The translations under genes and the position numbers were made by a program. Positions 9,228-48,692 of a stretch of 64,000 bases of DNA are shown here, piece by piece. The stretch covers positions 7,316,001 through 7,380,000 of the forward strand of contig CATNEN010000038.1 in assembly GCA_950097015.1 (NCBI GenBank). Reading direction: 5' to 3'. Numbering within the stretch: position 1 is the first letter of the stretch; each line of letters begins with the position of its first letter. The DNA comes from Macrostomum hystrix. Its lineage: Eukaryota; Animalia; Platyhelminthes. The notes beneath the pieces were generated by a model. The model did not search any database and had not been told where the DNA came from. It saw only the letters and a program-made list of their open reading frames with translations.

Positions 9228-10878
9228 TCACTGATCACCGAATTTGAAGTTGCAATTGCTGAAACTACCACTCAGATGAATATGTAGCTCCGGTCGAACA
9301 GTATCGGCCGAAGATGCTTGAACGTCAACCTTGACATTTTGGATTGACGTCGTCATTCCGACACTTGCCACCCGCTTTGGGACCTCGGAGATAGACGTAG
9401 CATCCCCCGCCGAATCCATATCGCCAGATAGTCCGACGATAGCCACAGACTTTATCGTTGGTCGCAGAAGACGAACTGGCTCCATACAGCGATGCTGACA
9501 ACACGTCGGACATCTTGCCCAGTTCACTCGCCTTGCACTTGCCATTTGTTAAGTAGCTAACGAAAGTACGTACAGAAAATGTTTTTTTTTACTTTTAAGT
9601 ATACAATGTACTACAAACAGGAGAATTTTATTGGCAGCCCGATGCTGACACTTACCGCTGAACAGTCTTCACGTCTTTATGGCCAGTTATTTTGCAGATC
9701 TGCTCCAAACGAAAGCCAGCTTCGTGCAACTCAGAAATGACGGTTGGACGAACGTTGTGCCCAGTGTAGACTTTAGACAACTGTGCAGTCGCTGAAATCC
9801 GGGCCATCAGATTCTGAAGCGCATTCACGCCCATTGGCTTTGTTGTGTACCAGTGAGCAGTCTTTTTGACGATGCTAGGCATAAGAAACAGAGGCATGTT
9901 ACTCTCGGCAGTCCCAGCCGAAAGGCTAGACTCCCGCTTTTCCAAGTACAACTTGATCGCAGCCACAGGGCAGTGCTCTCCGCCGGTCGACTTCACAATG
10001 GCTTCTCGATTGTCTTCCATTGCGCCCGGCGATAGTCTTGTGCCCACGGTTTTCTCGAGTCCTCCATTAAGTCGCAGTCTCCACTCCACTCCGCAACTTA
10101 AACACCAGACTGGGGACATTGAGCGATCGGAGCCATTCACGACCTCGCTGACCGAAGTAATAGAGCAGAATGAAGTACACCTCGTGTAGAAGCTTCGTCC
10201 CATTTGAGCGGTCGAAGTACGTCCACAGTTTGTTCAGATCGTCCTTCTCCATCGCCTCGTAATGCCGAATGCGACCGCCATTTTTTAGGAACATTCGACA
10301 AACGGCCTTCAAGGCTAAATTCGCAATATGAAACTTTTTTTCACCTTTAATGATGTTAATGGCCCTGGTACGCCTGAAATACCGAAACAATTGCCGGCTC
10401 GAAAGCAGATTAGACTAGACGGTGCGTAGAAGCTCCCATCTTGCTTTCTAAGAGTGGCATAGAAGAACTTCAGCTTTTCCGCAAGCTCGTCCTCAGTGCA
10501 GGATCCAGCTTCAAAGCTTTCGAATTTGTACTCTCGAAGAAATACTTGGAAGCGGGCAATAGCCGATTCTTCTCGCTTTTCGGTAGAGATGACCTTGGTC
10601 TCCTCGTCCTGTCTGTCGACAATCGCTTGCAGTTCAGTTGTGGAACCTCCAACATCCGGAATTGATTCCGAGTCTTCACCCTCCACCAAGGGAATCAGAT
10701 TGAACAGTTCTTCCAGAGTAGGTAGGAGTGGCTCATCATCATCGAACATCGTCCGCTCGATCAACGCACTTCTGTCCATGAGCTCTATGTGCTTCTCGAT
10801 TTCCGCCGTAGTCAAGCCGGTTATGCAAAAATTGTCCGGGAATTGAGACAGATGAATCATGTTTTCAAATGAACCCAC
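9228..10878 (-). mobile_element. Crypton-type tyrosine recombinase transposon gene (DUF3504-like), one intron, frameshifted
   Basis: FFYATLRKQDGSFYAPSSL, YYFGQRGRE (Arg), HCPV, YTGHNVRPT (HxxR) and TGHK. Splicing intron 9557-9655 (GTAAGT...TTAG) gives TVQR-YLTN with the catalytic Tyr; the C-terminus is FSNCNFKF. At least three frame changes. Confidence 0.88.
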
Positions 10879-23967: not shown

Positions 23968-26900
23968 ATGTCAGCTCTAGCTTCTAAACGTGAAGACTTC
24001 TACAAAGATCGCAGCTATGATCCGCTGGCAAAATATAGTCGGGATCGCAGCGACCTGCTCTCTAAGCTGGACTCCACATCGACTTCTTCTGCCGGAATTG
24101 GAGGCAAATCTCTTGGGGATAAGACAGGTTTGGGCAGTCTAGACGACAAAGCGGCTGCCGATGCTGGGGTTGGTTTTGCCAACCTTCCTAATCAGGTTAG
24201 TTTCCATGACAACTGATGCAACTGACTGAATGACCAGCTGATGCAACTGAGTGAATGACCAGCTGATGCAACTGACTGAATGACCAGCTGATGCAACTGA
24301 CTGAATGACCAGCTGATGCAACTGAGTGAATGACCAGCTGATGCAACTGACTGAATGACCAGCTGATGCAACTGAGTGAATGACCAACTGATGCAAATGA
24401 GTGAATGACCAGCTGATGCAACTGACTGAATGACCAGCTGATGCAACTGACTGAATGACCAGCTGATGCAACTGACTGAATGACCAGCTGGTGCAACTGA
24501 CTGAATGACCAGCTGATGCAACTGAGTGAATGACCAGCTGATGCAAATGAGTGAATGACCAGCTGATGCAACTGACTGAATGACCAGCTGATGCAACTGA
24601 GTGAATGACCAGCTGATGCAACTGAGTGAATGACCAGCTGATGCAACTGACTGAATGACCAGCTGATGCAAATGACTGAATGACCAGCTGATGCAACTGA
24701 GTGAATGACCAGCTGATGCAACTGACTGAATGACCAGCTGATGCAAATGACTGAATGACCAGCTGATGCAAATGAGTGAATGACCAGCTGATGCAACTGA
24801 CTGAATGACCAGCTGATGCAAATGACTGAATGACCAGCTGATGCAAATGACTGAATGACCTGCTGATGCAACTGACTGAATGACCAGCTGGTGCAACTGA
24901 CTGAATGACCAGCTGGTGCAACTGACTGAATGACCAGCTGGTGCAACTGAGTGAATGCCCTGCTGATGCAACTGACTGAATGACCAGCTGGTGCAAATGA
25001 GTGAATGACCAGCTGGTGCAACTGACTGAATGACCAGCTGATGCAACTGAGTGAATGCCCTGCTGATGCAACTGACTGAATGACCAGCTGGTGCAACTGA
25101 GTGAATGACCAGCTGATGCAACTGACTGAATGACCAGCTGGTGCAACTGAGTGAATGACCTGCTGATGCAACTGACTGAATGACCAGCTGATGCAAATGA
25201 CTGAATGACCAGCTGATGCAACTGAGTGAATGACCAGCTGATGCAACTGACTGAATGACCAGCTGGTGCAACTGAGTGAATGACCTGCTGATGCAACTGA
25301 CTGAATGACCAGCTGATGCAAATGACTGAATGACCAGCTGATGCAAATGACTGAATGACCAGCTGATGCAACTGACTGAATGGCCAGCTGATGCAACTGA
25401 CTGAATGACCAGCTGATGCAACTGACTGAATGACCAGCTGATGCAACTGACTGAATGGCCAGCTGATGCAACTGACTGAATGACCAGCTGATGCAACTGA
25501 CTGAATGGCCAGCTGGTGCAACTGACTGAATGACCAGCTGGTGCAACTGACTGAATGACCAGCTGGTGCAACTGAGTGAATGACCAGCTGATGCAACTGA
25601 GTGATTCATCTGTGTGCCACTGTGTTCCCATTCGCAGATCTATCGCCGGGCTGTTCGAAGAGGCTTCGAGTTTAATTTGATGGTTGTGGGCGAGTCTGGC
25701 CTGGGCAAGTCCACCCTGCTCAACAGCATGTTCTTGTCTGAGCTATACAACGCCGACCACATGGGCCCGTCCAAGAGGATTAAGAAGACGGTTAGTAACC
25801 TGTCACCTGACTCCTGTCACCTGACTATCATATCACCTGACTCCTGTCACCTGACTCCTGTCACCTGACTCCTGTCACCTGACTCTTGTCACCTGACTCC
25901 TGTCACCTGACTCCTGTCACCTGACTCTCCTGTCACCTGACTCCTGTCCTTCTATTCTCCTATCCTTTTATTCTCCTATCCTTCAATTTCTATTCTCCTA
26001 TCCTTCTATTTCTATTCTCCTATCCTTTTATTCTCCTATCCTTCAATTTCTATTCTCCTATCCTTCTATTCTCCTATCCTTCCATTCTCCTATCCTTCTA
26101 TTATCCTATCCTTCCATTCTCCTATCCTTCTATTATCCTATCCTTCCATTCTCCTATCCTTCTATTATCCTATCCTTCCATTCTCCTATCCTTCTATTAT
26201 CCTATCCTTTCATTCTCCTATCCTTCTATTATCCTATCCTTTCATTCTCCTATCCTTCCATTCTCCTATCCTTCAATTTCTATTCTCCTATCCTTCTATT
26301 ATCCTATCCTTCCATTCTCCTATCCTTCTATTATCCTATCCTTCCATTCTCCTATCCTTCTATTATCCTATCCTTTCATTCTCCTATCCTTCTATTATCC
26401 TATCCTTTCATTCTCCTATCCTTTCATTCTCCTATCCTTCCATTCTCCTATCCTTCCATTCTCCTATCCTTCTATTATCCTATCCTTTCATTCTCCTATC
26501 CTTTCATTCTCCTATCCTTCCATTCTCCTATCCTTTCATTCTCCTATCCTTCCATTCTCCTATCCTTTCATTCTCCTATCCTTTCATTCTCCTATCCTTT
26601 CATTCTCCTATCCTTCCATTCTCCTATCCTTCCATTCTCCTATCCTTCTATTCTCCTATCCTTTCATTCTCCTATCCTTCCATTCTCCTATCCTTCCATT
26701 CTCCTATCCTTCTATTATCCTATCCTTTCATTCTCCTATCCTTCCACTCTCCTATCCTTCCATTCTCCTATCCTTCCATTCTCCTATCCTTCTATTATCC
26801 TATCCTTTCATTCCTGTTTGTGTCCCCGCTGGCAGGTGTACGTGGAGTCGCACACGGTGCTGCTAAAGGAGAACTCGGTGCACCTGCGCCTCACCCTCAT

Positions 26901-29047
26901 CGACACGCCCGGTTTCGGCGACGCTGTGGACAATTCGAACTGCTGGAACCCGGTGCTGGACTACATCGATGCCCGATTCGAGGACCACCTGAACGCGGAG
27001 CAGAAGGTTAGCAGGGGCCAGCTGATCGACAGTCGGGTTCACTGCGTCCTGTACTTCATCGCGCCTACCGGACACGGCCTGAAGCCGTTGGACATTGAAT
27101 TTATGAAGCGATTGCACGACAAGGCCAACATTGTGCCAGTGCTGGCCAAGGCAGACTGCATGACAATGGACGAGCTGCGCGATTTTAAGAAGACCATCAT
27201 TAATGAGCTTGCCCAGCACAAGATTCGTGTCTATGACTTCCCGGAATCTGTCCTGGCCGCCGCCGCAGCCGCCGCCTCCGGCGATTCCAACGCCGTCTCG
27301 GCTGTTTCCGGCGGCGCGTCAGACAATTGCGACGATGAGAAGTCGGTGAAGCGGCTGAAGGAGCGCTTGCCGTTTGCCGTTGTCGGCGCCAACTGCTTGG
27401 TGGAGTCCGCCTCCGGTGGCAAAGGCGGCGGCAAAGTTCGCGGCCGGTCCTATCCCTGGGGCAACGTTGAGGTTGAGAATCTGGAGCACAACGACTTCCT
27501 AGCCCTGCGCAATCTCATGCTGCGCACCCACATGCAGGACCTGCGCGAGACCACTAACAATGTGCACTTTGAGAACTACCGCTATCTCAAGCTGTCCGGC
27601 ATCGCTCAGGAGTCCAAATTTCGCACCACAGACGGCAAAGATCCCATGGCTCAGATGGAGACTGAGAAACGAGATCACGAGCTCAAGATGCGCAAAATGG
27701 AGGCAGAAATGGAGGGCGTGTTTGAGATGAAGGTAATTCGGATTTGACAAGATTGATGCAAAGGATTTAAACATCTAGGAATTTATAGTTTCGGAACCTA
27801 GGAACAGGGATGTCCTAAAACTTCAGGCTTCAGTACATTTATACAAATTCATGTTTTAGTAGGTTTATCAAACTTCAGGTTTCAGTAGATTTTGAAAACT
27901 TCAGGTTTCAGTAGATTTTGAAAACTTCAGGTTTCAGTAGATTTTGAAAACTTCAGGTTTCAGTAGATTTATAAAACTTCAGGTTTCAGTAGATTTTTAA
28001 AACTTCAGGTTTCAGTAGATTTATAAAACTTCAGGTTTCAGTAGATTTTTAAAACTTCAGATTTCAGTAGATTTTAAAAACTTCAGGCTTCAGTAGATTT
28101 TGAAAACTTCAGGTTTCAGTAGATTTTGAAAACTTCAGGTTTCAGTAGATTTAGAAAACTTCAGGTTTCAGTAGATTTAGAAAACTTCAGGTTTCAGTAG
28201 ATTTTGAAAACTTCAGGTTTCAGTAGATTTTTAAAACTTCAGGTTTCAGTAGATTTATAAAACTTCAGGTTTCAGTAGATTTTTAAAACTTCAGATTTCA
28301 GTAGATTTTTAAAACTTCAGATTTCAGTAGATTTTGAAAACTTCAGGTTTCAGTAGATTTTTAAAACTTCAGGTTTCAGTAGATTTTTTAAACTTCAGGT
28401 TTCAGTAGGTTTATAAAACTTCAGGTTTCAGTAGGTTTATAAAACTTCAGGTTTCAGTAGATTTTGAAAACTTCAGGTTCCAGTAGATTTATAAAACTTC
28501 AGGCTTCAGTAGATTTATAAAACTTCAGGCTTCAGTAGATTTTTAAAACTTCAGGTTTCAGTAGATTTATAAAACTTCAGGCTTCAGTAGATTTTTAAAA
28601 CTTCAGGTTTCAGTAGATTTTTTAAACTTCAGGCTTCAGTAGATTTTTAAAACTTCAGGCTTCAGTAGATTTTTAAAACTTCAGGCTTCATTCGACTATA
28701 ACTTCAGGTGTCAAACTTAGATTTGAAAAGTCGGGAAAAGATGTTTCCCAATTCCCTGCCCGCAGGTGAAAGAGAAGAAGCAGAAGCTGAAGGACTCGGA
28801 GGTGGACCTGCAGCGCAGGGCGGATCAGATGCGGAAGCAGCTGGAGCAGCAGGAGGCGGAGCTGGCCGAGCGTCGCCGTCAGTTCGAGGCCGAGAAGCGG
28901 GTCTGGGAGGCGGCGCAGGCGCAGGGCGGTGGCGATTACAACGCCGGCGACCTCGGCGGCGGCGGTGGCGGCGTCTCTGCCACAATGGACGCCATACACG
29001 GGAAAGAGAAAAGCAAGTCCGAGAAGAAGAAGGGCCTGTTTAAATAA
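23968..29047 (+). CDS. SEPT7: Septin 7 (peanut-like); exons 23968-24195, 25638-25790, 26836-27732, 28766-29047
   Basis: [35 protein letters not shown] (G1), DTPGFGD (G3), AKAD (G4), RGRSYPWG, C-terminal coiled coil and KKKGLFK end; phase-0 GT-AG introns. Confidence 0.95.
24210..25605. repeat. 25-bp minisatellite (ACTGACTGAATGACCAGCTGATGCA)n filling septin intron 1
   Basis: ~55 copies, direct periodicity. Confidence 0.97.
25799..26812. repeat. 14-bp (CCTGTCACCTGACT)n then 16-bp (TTCTCCTATCCTTCYA)n filling septin intron 2
   Basis: Direct periodicity; the unit switches at ~25950. Confidence 0.96.
27870..28690. repeat. 26-bp minisatellite (AAAACTTCAGGTTTCAGTAGATTTTG)n in septin intron 3
   Basis: ~31 copies. 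Confidence 0.96.
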
Positions 29048-42571: not shown

Positions 42572-43400
42572 CTCTGTCTCCTCTGTCTCCTCTTTCTCCT
42601 CTGTCTCATCTGTCTCATCTGTCTCATCTGTCTCCTCTGTCTCATCTGTCTCATCTGTCTCATCTGTCTCCTCTGTCTCATCTGTCTCCTCTGTCTCATC
42701 TGTCTCCTCTGTCTCATCTGTCTCATCTGTCTCCTCTGTCTCATCTGTCTCATCTGTCTCCTCTTTCTCCTCTGTCTCCTCTGTCTCTTCTGTCTCATCT
42801 GTCTCATCTGTCTCATCTGTCTCATCTGTCTCATCTGTCTCCTCTGTCTCATCTGTCTCCTCTGTCTCATCTGTCTCATCTGTCTCATCTGTCTCCTCTG
42901 TCTCATCTGTCTCCTCTGTCTCATCTGTCTCATCTGTCTCATCTGTCTCATCTGTCTCATCTGTCTCCTCTGTCTCATCTGTCTCCTCTGTCTCATCTGT
43001 CTCATCTGTCTCATCTGTCTCCTCTGTCTCATCTGTCTCATCTGTCTCCTCTTTCTCCTCTGTCTCATCTGTCTCATCTGTCTCATCTGTCTCCTCTGTC
43101 TCATCTGTCTCATCTGTCTCATCTGTCTCCTCTGTCTCATCTGTCTCATCTGTCTCATCTGTCTCCTCTGTCTCATCTGTCTCCTCTGTCTCATCTGTCT
43201 CATCTGTCTCATCTGTCTCATCTGTCTCCTCTGTCTCATCTGTCTCATCTGTCTCCTCTTTCTCCTCTGTCTTATCTGTCTCATCTGTCTCCTCTGTCTC
43301 ATCAGTCTCATCTGTCTCATCAGTCTCATCTGCCTCCTCTGTCTCCTCTGCCTCCTCTGTCTCCTCTGCCTCTTCTTTCTCCCCTGTCTCATCTGTCTTC
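42572..43400. repeat. 9-bp repeat (CTGTCTCAT/CTGTCTCCT)n
   Basis: Direct periodicity; a related unit occurs inverted and diverged at ~2130-2285. Confidence 0.96.
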
Positions 43401-44226
43401 TGTCTGGAAAAATTGAAAAAATTCGGACAAATAAATTAGAAAAGTAATTCATTTTTCTGTCCAATCTTGCTTTAGTGATCCGAATGCCACTTAATTTATA
43501 TTAACTATTTCTATTATCCATCCGTTCTTAAAACTTTGCTATCGAATATTTGCTTTAACTAATTATTTGAGTATAAATTTCTTCATTCCAAAGTTGTACA
43601 GGATTCTCCTTGCGTCCGTCACTGACTGACGGTTCCAGGCCAGTGACTTGGAAAATAAACAGCATTGAACGGAAACTTCCAATGCATCCCATGAGACAAG
43701 ACAGACACACATCGAGACTGCTCTAATAATAGCGACTCTCGTAGCTTTCCAAGTTCGGAGAAATACTGTACTAATCTGGGCGGATTAACTCGGGGGATTT
43801 GGGATTAAGATTTTGAAATCCAATTATCCTCGGACTCCTTAACAGAGCGGTTCGAAGTTCAACTCTGAGTTACAGAGAACTGAGCTGGCGGTCCATGGAC
43901 TTAACAGCTGTACACAGCCGTTCGAAGTGGCGCGTACTTGAAATGCCACTGGCTGTACACGTGACCCTTCTGCTAGGTAATGTAACGTTGCTGTAAATAT
44001 AAGCACAAAAATAAGTCTTTAAGTCTGATTGTTTAAATAAATTAGCCAAGCACTCCCAAAAGTTGCTATTTTTGCACCCCTGTCGTGCCTAGGCCTAATT
44101 TTTTATTTGTTGCAAATTTTCTTTTGCTCTTAATTTTTACAGCACAATTAAACACATAAAAACTGTTTGCTTTAAGTTCCAAAGGAAATTGTGTCACATT
44201 GCACTCGTCAACTGGGTGTGACAACT

Positions 44227-45506
44227 CTAGCGCTTTCTATAGTCGGCGAATCGCTTTCGAAAATCGGCGAATCGCTTGTAATCGGCGAATCTTTTTCTGT
44301 AATCGGCGAATCTTTTTCTGTAATTGGCGAATCGCTTGACATTCGCAGTGGCCTCCGCTGACTCGTCAAGTCGATCAGATAGTTCGGCCAGGTAATCAGG
44401 CTTCTCTAGAGTAGATTGATGAATTGATCTACTAATTTATAGACTGATTCACTGATACACTAACAAATAAAAAATTAGATTGGTTGATCTCCCATCACTC
44501 CTTATGTCTTATCTCCCATCACTCCTCATACCTTATCTCCCATCACTCCTCATACCTTATCTCCAATCACTCATCATACCTTATCTCCCATCACTCATCA
44601 TACCTTATCTCCCATCACTCCTCATACCTTATCTCCCATCACTCCTCATACCTTATCTCCCATCACTCCTCATACCTTATCTCCCATCACTCCTCATACC
44701 TTATCTCCAATCACTCATCATACCTTATCTCCCATCACTCCTCATACCTTATCTCCCATCACTCCTCATACCTTATCTCCCATCACTCCTCATACCTTAT
44801 CTCCCATCACTCCTCATACCTTATCTCCCATCACTCCTTATGTCTTATCTCCCATCACTCCTCATACCTTATCTCCCATCACTCGTCATACCTTATCTCC
44901 AATCACTCCTCATACCTTATCTCCCATCACTCCTTATGTCTTATCTCCCATCACTCCTCATGTACCTTATCTCATCTCCCATCACTCCTCATACCTTATC
45001 TCCCATCACTCCTTATGTCTTATCTTCCATCACTCCTCATACCTTATCTCCAATCACTCCTCATACCTTATCTCCCATCACTCCTCATACCTTATCTCCC
45101 ATCACTCCTCATACCTTATCTCCCATCACTCATCATACCTTATCTCCCATCACTCCTCATACCTTATCTCCCATCACTCCTCATACCTTATCTCCCATCA
45201 CTCCTCATACCTTATCTCCCATCACTCCTCATACCTTATCTCCCATCACTCCTCATACCTTATCTCCCATCACTCCTCATGCCTTATCTCCCATCACTCC
45301 TCATACCTTATCTCCCATCACTCCTCATGCCTTATCTCCCATCACTCCTACTCTCTTGATAAATTGATAACCAGATTTCCAGATAGATTACTAGATTGAT
45401 AAGGCGCTAATATCGATTTAGTCTCACCCTGACGCCGCTCATTGCTGCCTGCATCGACTGTAAGTAGAACAGCGGCCGCAAGTAGGCAGAAAAACTTCAA
45501 ACTCAT
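44227..45506 (-). CDS. Neuropeptide prohormone (85 aa) encoding FANY, 3x FADY and FADF; exons 45428-45506 and 44227-44405
   Basis: MSLKFFCLLAAAVLLTVDAGSNERRQ|EKPDYLAELSDRLDESAEATANV-KR-FANY-RKR-FADY-RKR-FADY-KR-FADF-RKR-FADY-RKR*. Phase-1 intron GTGAGA...CTCTAG; synonymous codon variation between repeats. Confidence 0.88.
44488..45350. repeat. 24-bp minisatellite (CTTATCTCCCATCACTCCTCATAC)n filling the prohormone intron
   Basis: ~35 copies. Confidence 0.96.
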
Positions 45507-45956
45507 GACGCCTTTTTTTGCTCTTGGCTCGATATTTTTCAATGCACTGGACATTGTTGAAAGCGGATGTTGAGGCATTTTTGGCATGATAATCGTAGCT
45601 ATTTCATGTAAATTTATATTGCATGAAAATAATAAAAACACCTTGGTCATTCTACTGTGAGAAAAAGATTTTAGAAGTCTTTTTCAGTACTTTAATTTTT
45701 TACTGGCTCGAGAGAGTTGGCTCAAGAGAATCTATGCTGCTATCAAAGACCAACTCGTGTGCCTGGACAGACACTCAGCTGTCCATCAAGGACCCCCTTC
45801 AAACGTTCGTGTCAGGGGATTAAGCTTCCCCATCCGTCTCACCTGATAGACTCAGAGCTTAATTATTACCGAGTCAACTGAGATATTTTTGCTTTTACAG
45901 CTAAACAGGCGTGCCGTTTTTCTGTTCCGCTTTTTGCGGCTAATTGCTCCGAAATG

Positions 45957-48692
45957 CTAAGAGGGTGCGCCTGCGGAGGGTGAAGGTGGTGTGGGAGGAC
46001 CAGATACGCTTTGTGCAACTGGAAAAGAGAAGAAATATAACGACAGATCTCTAGAGCAACCATTTAACATTTTATTGAAAACGTGCTTTCTTCGCGAACT
46101 AAAAAGCTAAAAAAAACTGCTGAAATGCAAGCGGCAACAGGCTGAGTTTCAAGCTAATTCGCATGCTGGTAAAATGGGAGGGATGGAGAGATGGGAGATT
46201 TGCGAGGAGAATGTATAGATGACAAGGAAGAGATGGGAGATAAAGAAGGAGGAGAGATGGAAGATAAGGGAGGGGAGATGGGAGAGATGGGAGGAGAGAT
46301 GGGAGATAAGGAAGGAGGAGAGATGGGAGATAAGGAAGTAGGAGAGATGGGAGATAAGGAAGGAGGAGAGATGGGAGATAAGGAAGTAGGAGAGATGGGA
46401 GATAAGGAAGGAGGAGAGATGGGAGATAAGGAAGTAGGAGAGATGGGAGATAAGGAAGTAGGAGAGATGGGAGATAAGGAAGGAGGAGAGATGGGAGATA
46501 AGGAAGGAGGAGAGATGGGAGATAAGGAAGTAGGAGAGATGGGAGATAAGGGAGGAGGAGAGATGGGCGATAAGGAAGGAGGAGAGATGGGAGATAAGGG
46601 AGGAGGAGAGATGGGCGATAAGGAAGGAGGAGAGATGGGAGATAAGGAAGGTGGAGAGATGGGAGATAAGGAAGGTGGAGAGATGGGAGATAAGGGAGGA
46701 GGAGAGATGGGAGATAAGGTAGGAGGAGAGATGTGGGATATACTGAGGAAGCACGAAGCACAGAGCAGCTCTTGATTGTCGCAGATCATGGAATAGTCAT
46801 AAAAGTCGCAGTTGAACAGCCAGTTGCAGTTGCTATGGCACTGGGTGGGGCGTGTTTTTACAACGCTTTCGACTGGAAGTAAATTTTTACAACTTGCCAA
46901 AGTCATAATTTTTTCGTGCCGCATTAATAATGAAATCTAGCTGGTACAGAAACCACTGAATACCCACTTTTTCTCCAACCGCAGTAAAAATGGCGCATAT
47001 CTTTTCAGAGCAAAGCATAAAGCAATTTATTATGCGTAAATTGATCATATTGCCAACTGAGCTTTGATTAGTCAGGTCTTAGTTAAACCTTCAAGAAGGA
47101 AGGATTCCGATATGTACGGCTATGAACAAAATGGAATCTAGTATCATAGAAGTTCTAGGAAACAAGGAGACGGGTCGTTGAGATTCTAAGAAACAATGAG
47201 AGATATTGTTGAGATTCTAAGAAACAATGAGAGATTTTGTTGAGATTCTAAGAAACGATGAGAGAGATTGTTGAGATTCTAAGAAACAATGAGATATATT
47301 GTTGAGATTCTAAGAAACGATGAGAGAGATTGTTGAGATTCTAAGAAACGATGAGAGACATTGTTGAGATTCTAAGAAACGATGAGAGAGATTGTTTAGA
47401 TTCTAAGAGGCGATGAGGGAGAGCTTCTGAGATTCTAAGAAACGATGATGGAAAGCTGCTGAGATTCTAAGAAACGATGAGGGAGAGCTTCTGAGATTCT
47501 AAGAAACGATGAGGGAGAGCTTCTGAGATTCTAAGAAACGATGAGGGAGAGCTTCTGAGATTCTAAGAAACGATGAGGGAGAGCTTCTGAGATTCTAAGA
47601 AACGATGATGGAAAGCTGCTGAGATTCTAAGAAACGATGAGGGAGAGCTTCTGAGATTCTAAGAAACGATGAGGGAGAGCTTCTGAGATTCTAAGAAACG
47701 ATGAGGGAGAGCTTCTGAGATTCTAAGAAACGATGAGGGAGAGCTGCTGAGATTCTAAGAAACAATGAGGGAGAGCTTCTGAGATTCTAAGAAACGATGA
47801 GGGAGAGCTTCTGAGATTCTAAGAAACGATGAGGGAGAGCTGCTGAGATTCTAAGAAACAATGAGGGAGAGCTTCTGAGATTCTAAGAAACGATGAGGGA
47901 GAGCTTTTGAGATTCTAAGAAACGATGATGGAAAGCTGCTGAGATTCTAAGAAACGATGAGGGAGAGCTTCTGAGATTCTAAGAAACGATGAGGGAGAGC
48001 TTCTGAGATTCTAAGAAACGATGAGGGAGAGCTTCTGAGATTCTAAGAAACAATGAGGGAGAGCTTCTGAGATTCTAAGAAACAATGAGGGAGAGCTGCT
48101 GAGATTCTAAGAAACGATGAGGGAGAGCTTCTGAGATTCTAAGAAACAATGAGGGAGAGCTGCTGAGATTCTAAGAAACAATGAGGGAGAGCTGCTGAGA
48201 TTCTAAGAAACGATGAGGGAGAGCTTCTGAGATTCTAAGAAACAATGAGGGAGAGCTGCTGAGATTCTAAGAAACAATGAGGGAGAGCTGCTGAGATTCT
48301 AAGAAACAATGAGGGAGAGCTGCTGAGATTCTAAGAAACGATGAGGGAGAGCTCTTCTGAGATTCTAAGAAACGATGAGGGAGAGCTGCTGAGATTCTAA
48401 GAAACGATGAGGGAGAGCTGCTGAGATTCTAAGAAACGATGAGGGAGAGCTGCTGAGATTCTAAGAAACGATGAGGGAGAGCTCTTCTGAGATTCTAAGA
48501 AACGATGAGGGAGAGCTTCTGAGATTGACAGTGACAGTTGGGGTTTAAAGAAGCGAAGATTGAGACTGAAATTTGAACCATAAAATACATTTGCCAGTTA
48601 AGTTAATATTTCTGTTGCTTACCTTTGCAGATTCGAACTATGCCCCTCCTGTAGCAGATATAAGGTGCTGCTGAGCGCGAATTTCGCTGCTC
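45957..48692 (-). CDS. Putative small Cys-rich protein (PAN/apple-like Cys spacing); exons 48623-48692, 46744-46872, 45957-46018; start not found
   Basis: Three phase-compatible GT-AG exons give EQRNSRSAAPYICYRRGIVRICKVESVVKTRPTQCHSNCNWLFNCDFYDYSMICDNQELLCASCFLIAQSVSGPPTPPSPSAGAPS*; both introns are minisatellite-filled. Confidence 0.5.
46188..46735. repeat. 24-bp minisatellite (GGAGAGATGGGAGATAAGGAAGGA)n
   Basis: ~22 copies; the reverse complement is related to the 44488-45350 unit. Confidence 0.95.
47150..48526. repeat. ~32-bp minisatellite (GAGATTCTAAGAAACGATGAGGGAGAGCTTCT)n
   Basis: ~42 copies; left units more diverged. Confidence 0.96.

Follow-up and report, generated by a model that had tools for sequence, protein, structure and literature searches.

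The window analysed here, a 64,000-nucleotide stretch of the Macrostomum hystrix genome, carries on its minus strand a small gene with two coding exons, to which we refer as the FADY gene after the tetrapeptide that it repeats. Together, the exons specify a predicted prepropeptide of 85 residues that contains no other domain. The first exon encodes a signal peptide, and the second, entered through a Glu codon split G/AG across the exon junction, reads KPDY...ATANV and then passes directly into an array of very short peptide units separated by basic residues. An acidic spacer followed by five FA(D/N)(Y/F) copies bounded by KR or RKR had been proposed in an earlier reading of this stretch from sequence alone (the sequence-only reading), and both are read in exon 2. 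Because the FADY frame of this exon has no start codon of its own, it is missing from the mechanical list of open reading frames (ORFs), as that reading had also pointed out, whereas the minisatellite that fills the intron yields spurious ORFs of 291–295 amino acids on the plus strand. The coordinates of all features are collected in Table 1, together with those of two related loci elsewhere in the genome.

Table 1. Features of the FADY gene (positions within the 64,000-nucleotide window) and positions of its two sister loci (genome contig coordinates).
Feature	Position	Strand	Remarks
5'UTR, minimum observed extent	45507..45549	-	loose end of the longest cDNA contig, if colinear with the genome; first 30 letters displayed
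Coding exon 1, 79 nt	45428..45506	-	start codon, signal peptide and first propeptide residues including the RR site; ends in phase 1
ATG start codon (likely)	45506-45504	-
Intron, GT-AG, phase 1, 1022 nt	44406..45427	-	donor GTGAGA, acceptor CTCTAG; skipped by cDNA contigs of three runs
24-bp minisatellite inside the intron	44487..45349	.	35.7 copies, 93% matches
Exon 2, whole coding part	44405-44227	-	starts at the A behind acceptor CTCTAG
Start of exon 2: rest of split Glu codon and 22-residue acidic spacer	44340..44405	-	spacer pI 4.05
Peptide array KR-FANY-RKR-FADY-RKR-FADY-KR-FADF-RKR-FADY-RKR	44230..44339	-	36 residues, 16 basic and 4 acidic; pI 11.3
FANY	44331-44320	-
FADY, first	44310-44299	-
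FADY, second	44289-44278	-
FADF	44271-44260	-
FADY, third	44250-44239	-
Stop codon TAG	44227..44229	-	immediately behind the last RKR
3'UTR	44055..44226	-	contigs colinear down to 44077 (X3) or 44055 (X4, X5)
AATAAA signal in the 3'UTR	44107-44102	-
YADF precursor (sister locus)	C7:4600087-4600505		locus L002
FADF array (sister locus)	C1:4877528 onward		loci L009, L003

The signal peptide and the cleavage sites were judged by sequence rules. Exon 1 places a Lys at position 4 ahead of a hydrophobic core of 13 residues (residues 5–17; 12-residue Kyte-Doolittle mean up to 2.8), and the predicted signal cleavage, V-D-A/G-S, obeys the -3/-1 rule and is followed by a short stretch containing the RR site. 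The ATG at 45506 is the likely start codon. An alternative in-frame ATG lies at 45554-45552, 5 nt past the end of the longest contig (~45549), and initiation there would merely extend the n-region of the signal peptide.

To establish whether the two exons are joined in a transcript, as the sequence-only reading had supposed in describing an in-phase splice across the minisatellite-filled intron, we turned to public sequencing runs. All sampled words of exon 2 and the 3'UTR are present in four small runs from a single 2020 study (P2, organism B), and a small share of them in two runs labelled organism A. We aligned the Logan contigs of three P2 runs (X3, X4, and X5) and of one organism-A run on positions 44000-44486, the segment beside the minisatellite. 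X3, X4, and X5 each contain a contig of 445–473 nt that matches the genome from 44055 or 44077 to 44406 with zero differences, the base aligned at 44406 being identical to the last base of exon 1. Past the junction, these contigs have loose ends of 93, 115, and 121 letters, compared with the 78 nt of exon 1 that lie upstream of its last base, and the 30 displayed loose-end letters, once reverse-complemented, match exactly the 30 exon-1 bases that precede the final G. Intron bases 44407-44486 were covered by no contig of X3, X4, X5, or the organism-A run. The junction 45428/44405 is thus confirmed in cDNA contigs of three runs: the contigs skip the intron, which identifies them as cDNA and indicates expression of the gene in no fewer than three samples, all from one study. 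Since all three runs derive from that one study, they amount to one independent source of transcript support rather than three. Contig depth was 33–41 in runs of only ~40 million letters. Colinearity of contigs and genome extends past the stop codon and the AATAAA signal, indicating that no further coding exon follows. Hence, the gene is real, transcribed, and spliced in phase from the signal-peptide exon to the repeat exon. Separately, the organism-A run X1 holds a 51-nt contig that lies over the last FADF and FADY units (44231-44277) with 3 differences; it could reflect allelic variation, a different strain, or a related species of Macrostomum, and hints at an existing orthologue.

The array is also a DNA tandem repeat, and its copies were compared codon by codon. 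All five units use one codon for Phe and one for Ala; GAT and GAC both occur for Asp, as do TAC and TAT for Tyr. At the basic positions, AGA, CGA, CGC, AAA, and AAG are all found, so that the cleavage sites differ among copies (AAG CGA, AGA AAA AGA, CGA AAG CGA, and AGA AAG CGC). All of the synonymous differences that the sequence-only reading had listed are thus present. Only two differences between copies change a residue, both conservatively (D to N and Y to F), in addition to one gain or loss of a spacer Arg. The same nucleotide differences alter residues in frame 1 and give a stop in frame 2. Numbers this small do not allow a formal selection test. The FADY frame is nevertheless supported by the splice phase, which picks it out, and by the end of the ORF directly behind a cleavage site. 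Taken together, the comparison points to the FADY frame as the one under selection, and the chief argument for this is that three diverged loci have retained one core.

These loci emerged from a six-frame search of the genome (220,453,370 bases in 42 contigs) with the exon-2 peptide as query, which returned two true sister loci, a YADF gene on contig C7 and a FADF array on contig C1. The C7 gene opens with a 79-nt signal-peptide exon (L002:1343-1421) followed by GTGAGT and a phase-1 intron that ends in AG at 1500-1501; in its second exon, an acidic spacer precedes seven YADF units, one YTDF-G, and one YTEF-G, set between KR, KKR, and RKR sites. The C1 gene has a 76-nt signal-peptide exon (L009:7529-7604) and a phase-1 intron that, as in the FADY gene, is filled with minisatellite; its second exon begins at L003:1040 with a GAG split codon and continues into dozens of FADF units with KKKR, KKR, or KER spacers. 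In all three loci, a phase-1 intron directly follows the signal peptide, the first coding exon measuring 79, 79, and 76 nt in the FADY, YADF, and FADF genes, respectively, and two of the three use GAG as the split codon. The sisters therefore share with the FADY gene the two-exon build, a signal-peptide exon of 25–26 codons, the aromatic-Ala-Asp-aromatic core, and KR, RKR, or KKR spacers. In an alignment of the three loci, the Ala-Asp and Lys-Arg columns are invariant, while the signal peptides and spacers have diverged and are only weakly alike. The sisters differ from the FADY gene in their C-terminal residue, which is Phe rather than mostly Tyr. The YADF gene alone adds two Gly-extended units, which are predicted to be amidated, and the FADF locus stands apart through its dozens of copies with KKKR spacers.

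A DNA pattern for the shared units, R-[FY]-A-[DN]-[FY]-basic-basic-R, gave 19 matches in the 220-Mb genome against 0 in the reversed control, and all 19 are confined to the FADY gene, the YADF gene on C7, and the FADF gene on C1. By the sequence criteria described above, the FADY gene is one of a three-locus family built around an aromatic-Ala-Asp-aromatic core and not a singleton. The C1 member is extreme in its copy number, from dozens to upwards of 100; its protein is very basic and could also function uncut. A second, far longer KKKR-FADF run lies downstream of the first C1 array (C1:4881480-4883800; L034:660-2910), extending for ~2.3 kb with the FADF frame open; the two runs may represent one gene, two genes, or in part satellite.

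Weaker matches of the genome search, on C37, C25, C33, C5, C8, C1, and other contigs, were rejected as family members: they are minisatellites whose translations contain K/R pairs, and several are open on both strands. Two arrays of KKR-FESF or EKR-FESL units, at C25:5843700-5845400 (L013) and C1:7190600-7191600 (L019), look precursor-like. Both strands of these FESF/FESL arrays are open, and such arrays recur at several loci; they are hence most likely DNA satellites.

We then searched for relatives outside the genome, using the exons as separate queries. A word-indexed protein search with the exon-2 peptide, covering proteins of 32–101 amino acids, yielded no candidate. An exhaustive HMMER search of 1.84 billion representative proteins gave 7 matches and no credible relative among them; all 7 were dismissed as repeat proteins with no relation to the query or as satellites in translation (KTCADYR, RTGDYRL, MFADFAI, and the like), and none of them combines a signal peptide with KR-flanked units. 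In the ESM Atlas, the best score was 0.83, under the useful range, and its low matches include several clusters of multi-copy neuropeptide precursors, which are a lead at most. These protein searches found no orthologue in another species, and any conservation beyond the M. hystrix genome is hypothetical. A full-text literature search for KRFADY, RFADY, FADYRKR, FADYKR, and KRFANY turned up personal names and chance strings but no peptide paper. FADF, FADY, YADF, and DFKR were likewise absent from the accessible portions of the planarian prohormone paper of Collins et al. 2010 and its supplements (PMC2953531). The sequence-only reading had not recognised the peptide family, and the peptide matches no flatworm peptide described in these sources. 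The planarian prohormones (npp/spp and others; PMC2953531) nonetheless belong with the FADY gene in kind: they too are small prohormones of flatworms, of which many are confined to one lineage and escaped ordinary annotation; the difference, as far as the accessible text goes, is that they lack FADY-type motifs.

The anatomy of the gene is that of a multi-copy precursor processed by prohormone convertases, in agreement with the sequence-only reading: it has a signal peptide, an acidic spacer, five copies flanked by KR or RKR, and an in-frame spliced transcript, and the genome encodes several P-domain convertases, the Pfam P_proprotein domain scoring above cut-off at no fewer than six loci (at least 6). 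The reading as a precursor is well supported, through this anatomy, the two paralogues, and transcription. We consider it probable that the FADY gene encodes a two-exon, 85-residue secretory prepropeptide giving rise to non-amidated tetrapeptides that act as extracellular signals, and we treat it as a candidate on these grounds. In this scheme, which we infer from the precursor anatomy and the established maturation pathway of peptide hormones, the signal peptide would be removed after V-D-A, and subtilisin-like proprotein convertases of the regulated secretory pathway would cleave behind KR and RKR, and perhaps also behind the RR of the propeptide. A carboxypeptidase E/D-type enzyme would then trim the basic residues. 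The predicted products are three copies of FADY, one of FANY, and one of FADF, all with free C-termini, plus one acidic spacer peptide that would possibly begin with Gln after the RR site. No Gly stands ahead of the basic sites, and amidation is therefore not expected, as had also been anticipated from the sequence. The tetrapeptides would signal extracellularly, as a neuropeptide or peptide hormone, through a putative receptor. The Gly-KR units of the YADF sister are classical amidation signals and thereby tie the family to the peptide-hormone pathway. To our knowledge, non-amidated peptides of four residues are unusual as ligands.

Among described peptides, the nearest analogue by sequence is the AxxxDF family of nemerteans and brachiopods, which is closer than achatin. 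These are hexapeptides, ASWLDF in nemerteans and AKFNDF in brachiopods (Thiel et al. 2021, PMC8557429), that occur in many non-amidated copies between KR sites and have been confirmed by mass spectrometry in the nemertean Lineus (PMC8557429). Their precursors share with the FADY gene a signal peptide, an acidic spacer, and KR-flanked non-amidated copies, the brachiopod copies abutting directly, and the peptides of both groups end in aromatic-x-Asp-aromatic (W-L-D-F and F-N-D-F against F-A-D-F, Y-A-D-F, and F-A-D-Y). The likeness raises the possibility that FADY is a shortened flatworm member of this family, and so a diverged representative of a described group. Besides the common build and the common ending, the genome itself could be read in favour of this, as a DNA pattern for AxxxDF-type units gave 0 matches in it, leaving no separate gene of that type. 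The two features that define the family, hexapeptide length and Ala1, are however both absent from the FADY gene, whose tetrapeptides begin with Phe, lack the N-terminal Ala-x, and mostly end in Tyr: one of the five copies ends in Phe, three in D-Y, and one in N-Y, while the sisters end in A-D-F. Moreover, no similarity is detectable between the precursors outside the peptide motif, and three shared positions are too few to establish homology. Descent from an AxxxDF-like ancestor is thus possible on motif grounds, but membership in that family strikes us as rather unlikely. The resemblance to achatin suggested by the sequence-only reading fared worse. Achatin/GFFD-type peptides, which are found in molluscs, annelids, and nemerteans, have Gly1, an aromatic residue at position 2 that is isomerised to D-Phe, and a terminal Asp or Asn. 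As with FADY, many copies of a non-amidated tetrapeptide sit between dibasic sites, and the tripeptide F-A-D in such a setting is the sole element of sequence in common. FADY has no Gly ahead of Phe, carries an additional aromatic residue behind Asp in place of a terminal Asp or Asn, and places Phe as residue 1 rather than as the isomerised residue 2; in the YADF sister, the first residue is Tyr. An achatin-type DNA pattern occurred in the genome at chance level (3 matches against 18 in the control). We regard a derived achatin (GFAD-type) precursor as very improbable.

Other explanations concern the role of the product rather than its kinship. The precursor might be processed and secreted by gland, epidermal, or reproductive cells, yielding a seminal-fluid, pheromone-like, or defensive peptide instead of a neuronal one. 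In Macrostomum, many secreted reproductive transcripts evolve fast, are restricted to a lineage, and are difficult to match between species (PMC10468722), and no orthologue of the FADY gene was found outside the M. hystrix genome; the contig depth, although a poor measure, suggests fairly strong expression. Very short, identical units spaced strictly by two or three basic residues are typical of neuroendocrine precursors, however, and the amidation signals of the YADF sister point in the same direction, so that we judge a non-neuronal secretory role to be unlikely while giving it some weight. A further possibility is a secreted protein that functions without cleavage, its head acidic and its repeat tail basic and aromatic, or else a young, functionless ORF that arose from a coding minisatellite. 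The array has a tandem-repeat period of 21/39 at the DNA level and lies in a minisatellite-rich genome, look-alike satellites with open frames exist elsewhere (the KRFESF-type arrays open on both strands being an example), and the repeat part has a strongly basic pI (Table 1). Against this stand the in-phase joining of the array to a signal peptide, an ORF that stops exactly behind a cleavage site, between-copy variation that is synonymous in the FADY frame, and the preservation of motif and gene structure at three diverged loci. An uncut or functionless product is in our estimation quite improbable, and a cleaved precursor of signalling tetrapeptides is the reading that we favour.

On this favoured reading, the gene is a lineage-restricted candidate peptide-hormone precursor, a solid but fairly ordinary one that belongs to the well-known class of multi-copy precursors. 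A more far-reaching proposal is that the FADY, FADF, and YADF tetrapeptides form a distinct flatworm signalling system with a receptor of its own, which we put forward as a speculative idea with a small chance of being correct. In one version, this system may correspond, in shortened flatworm form, to the spiralian AxxxDF peptides; in another, the peptides may carry a D-residue at position 2, which here would be D-Ala. Known animal peptide isomerases act at position 2, as in the dermorphin-type Tyr-D-Ala-Phe peptides. If the link to AxxxDF were true, an orphan spiralian peptide family would reach into the flatworms, and if either version were true, three easily made tetrapeptides could deorphanise a receptor in a tractable flatworm. 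The products are tiny and cheap to synthesise, and Macrostomum offers RNAi, in situ hybridisation, and positional RNA-seq, which makes both function and receptor testable.

The FADY gene adds a third member, ending in Tyr instead of Phe, to a family of peptide precursors that is absent from the protein databases and the literature searched. It also illustrates a blind spot of annotation, in that small two-exon peptide genes with a minisatellite-stuffed intron and a satellite-like peptide exon escape both ORF-based and homology-based approaches.

The whole 64-kb window is very rich in minisatellite arrays. Beside the gene lie a 9-bp unit repeated 44 times (43000-43398) and a 31-bp unit repeated 11 times (47153-47486), and another 24-bp minisatellite is found 900 bp upstream of the gene at 46229-46740. 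G-rich units with GGGAGATAAG or GGGATAAAGAG occur in three minisatellites, namely those of the gene's intron, of 46229-46740, and of the intron of the C1 sister (L003:1-560). Related minisatellites seem to colonise introns of the aromatic-Ala-Asp-aromatic gene family.

Three further ORFs of the window have recognisable domains. An exon-sized ORF at 885-1382 on the plus strand matches the protein kinase domain (Pfam Pkinase, E 2e-26), of which it encodes the C-terminal half. On the minus strand, the ORF at 9652-10203 weakly matches two domains, tyrosine recombinase (Phage_integrase) and DUF3504, a pairing that we take to suggest a Crypton-like element or a gene descended from such an element. 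Finally, an intron-free ORF of 309 amino acids at 26818-27747 on the plus strand contains the septin GTPase domain in full length (Pfam Septin, E 1.5e-91).
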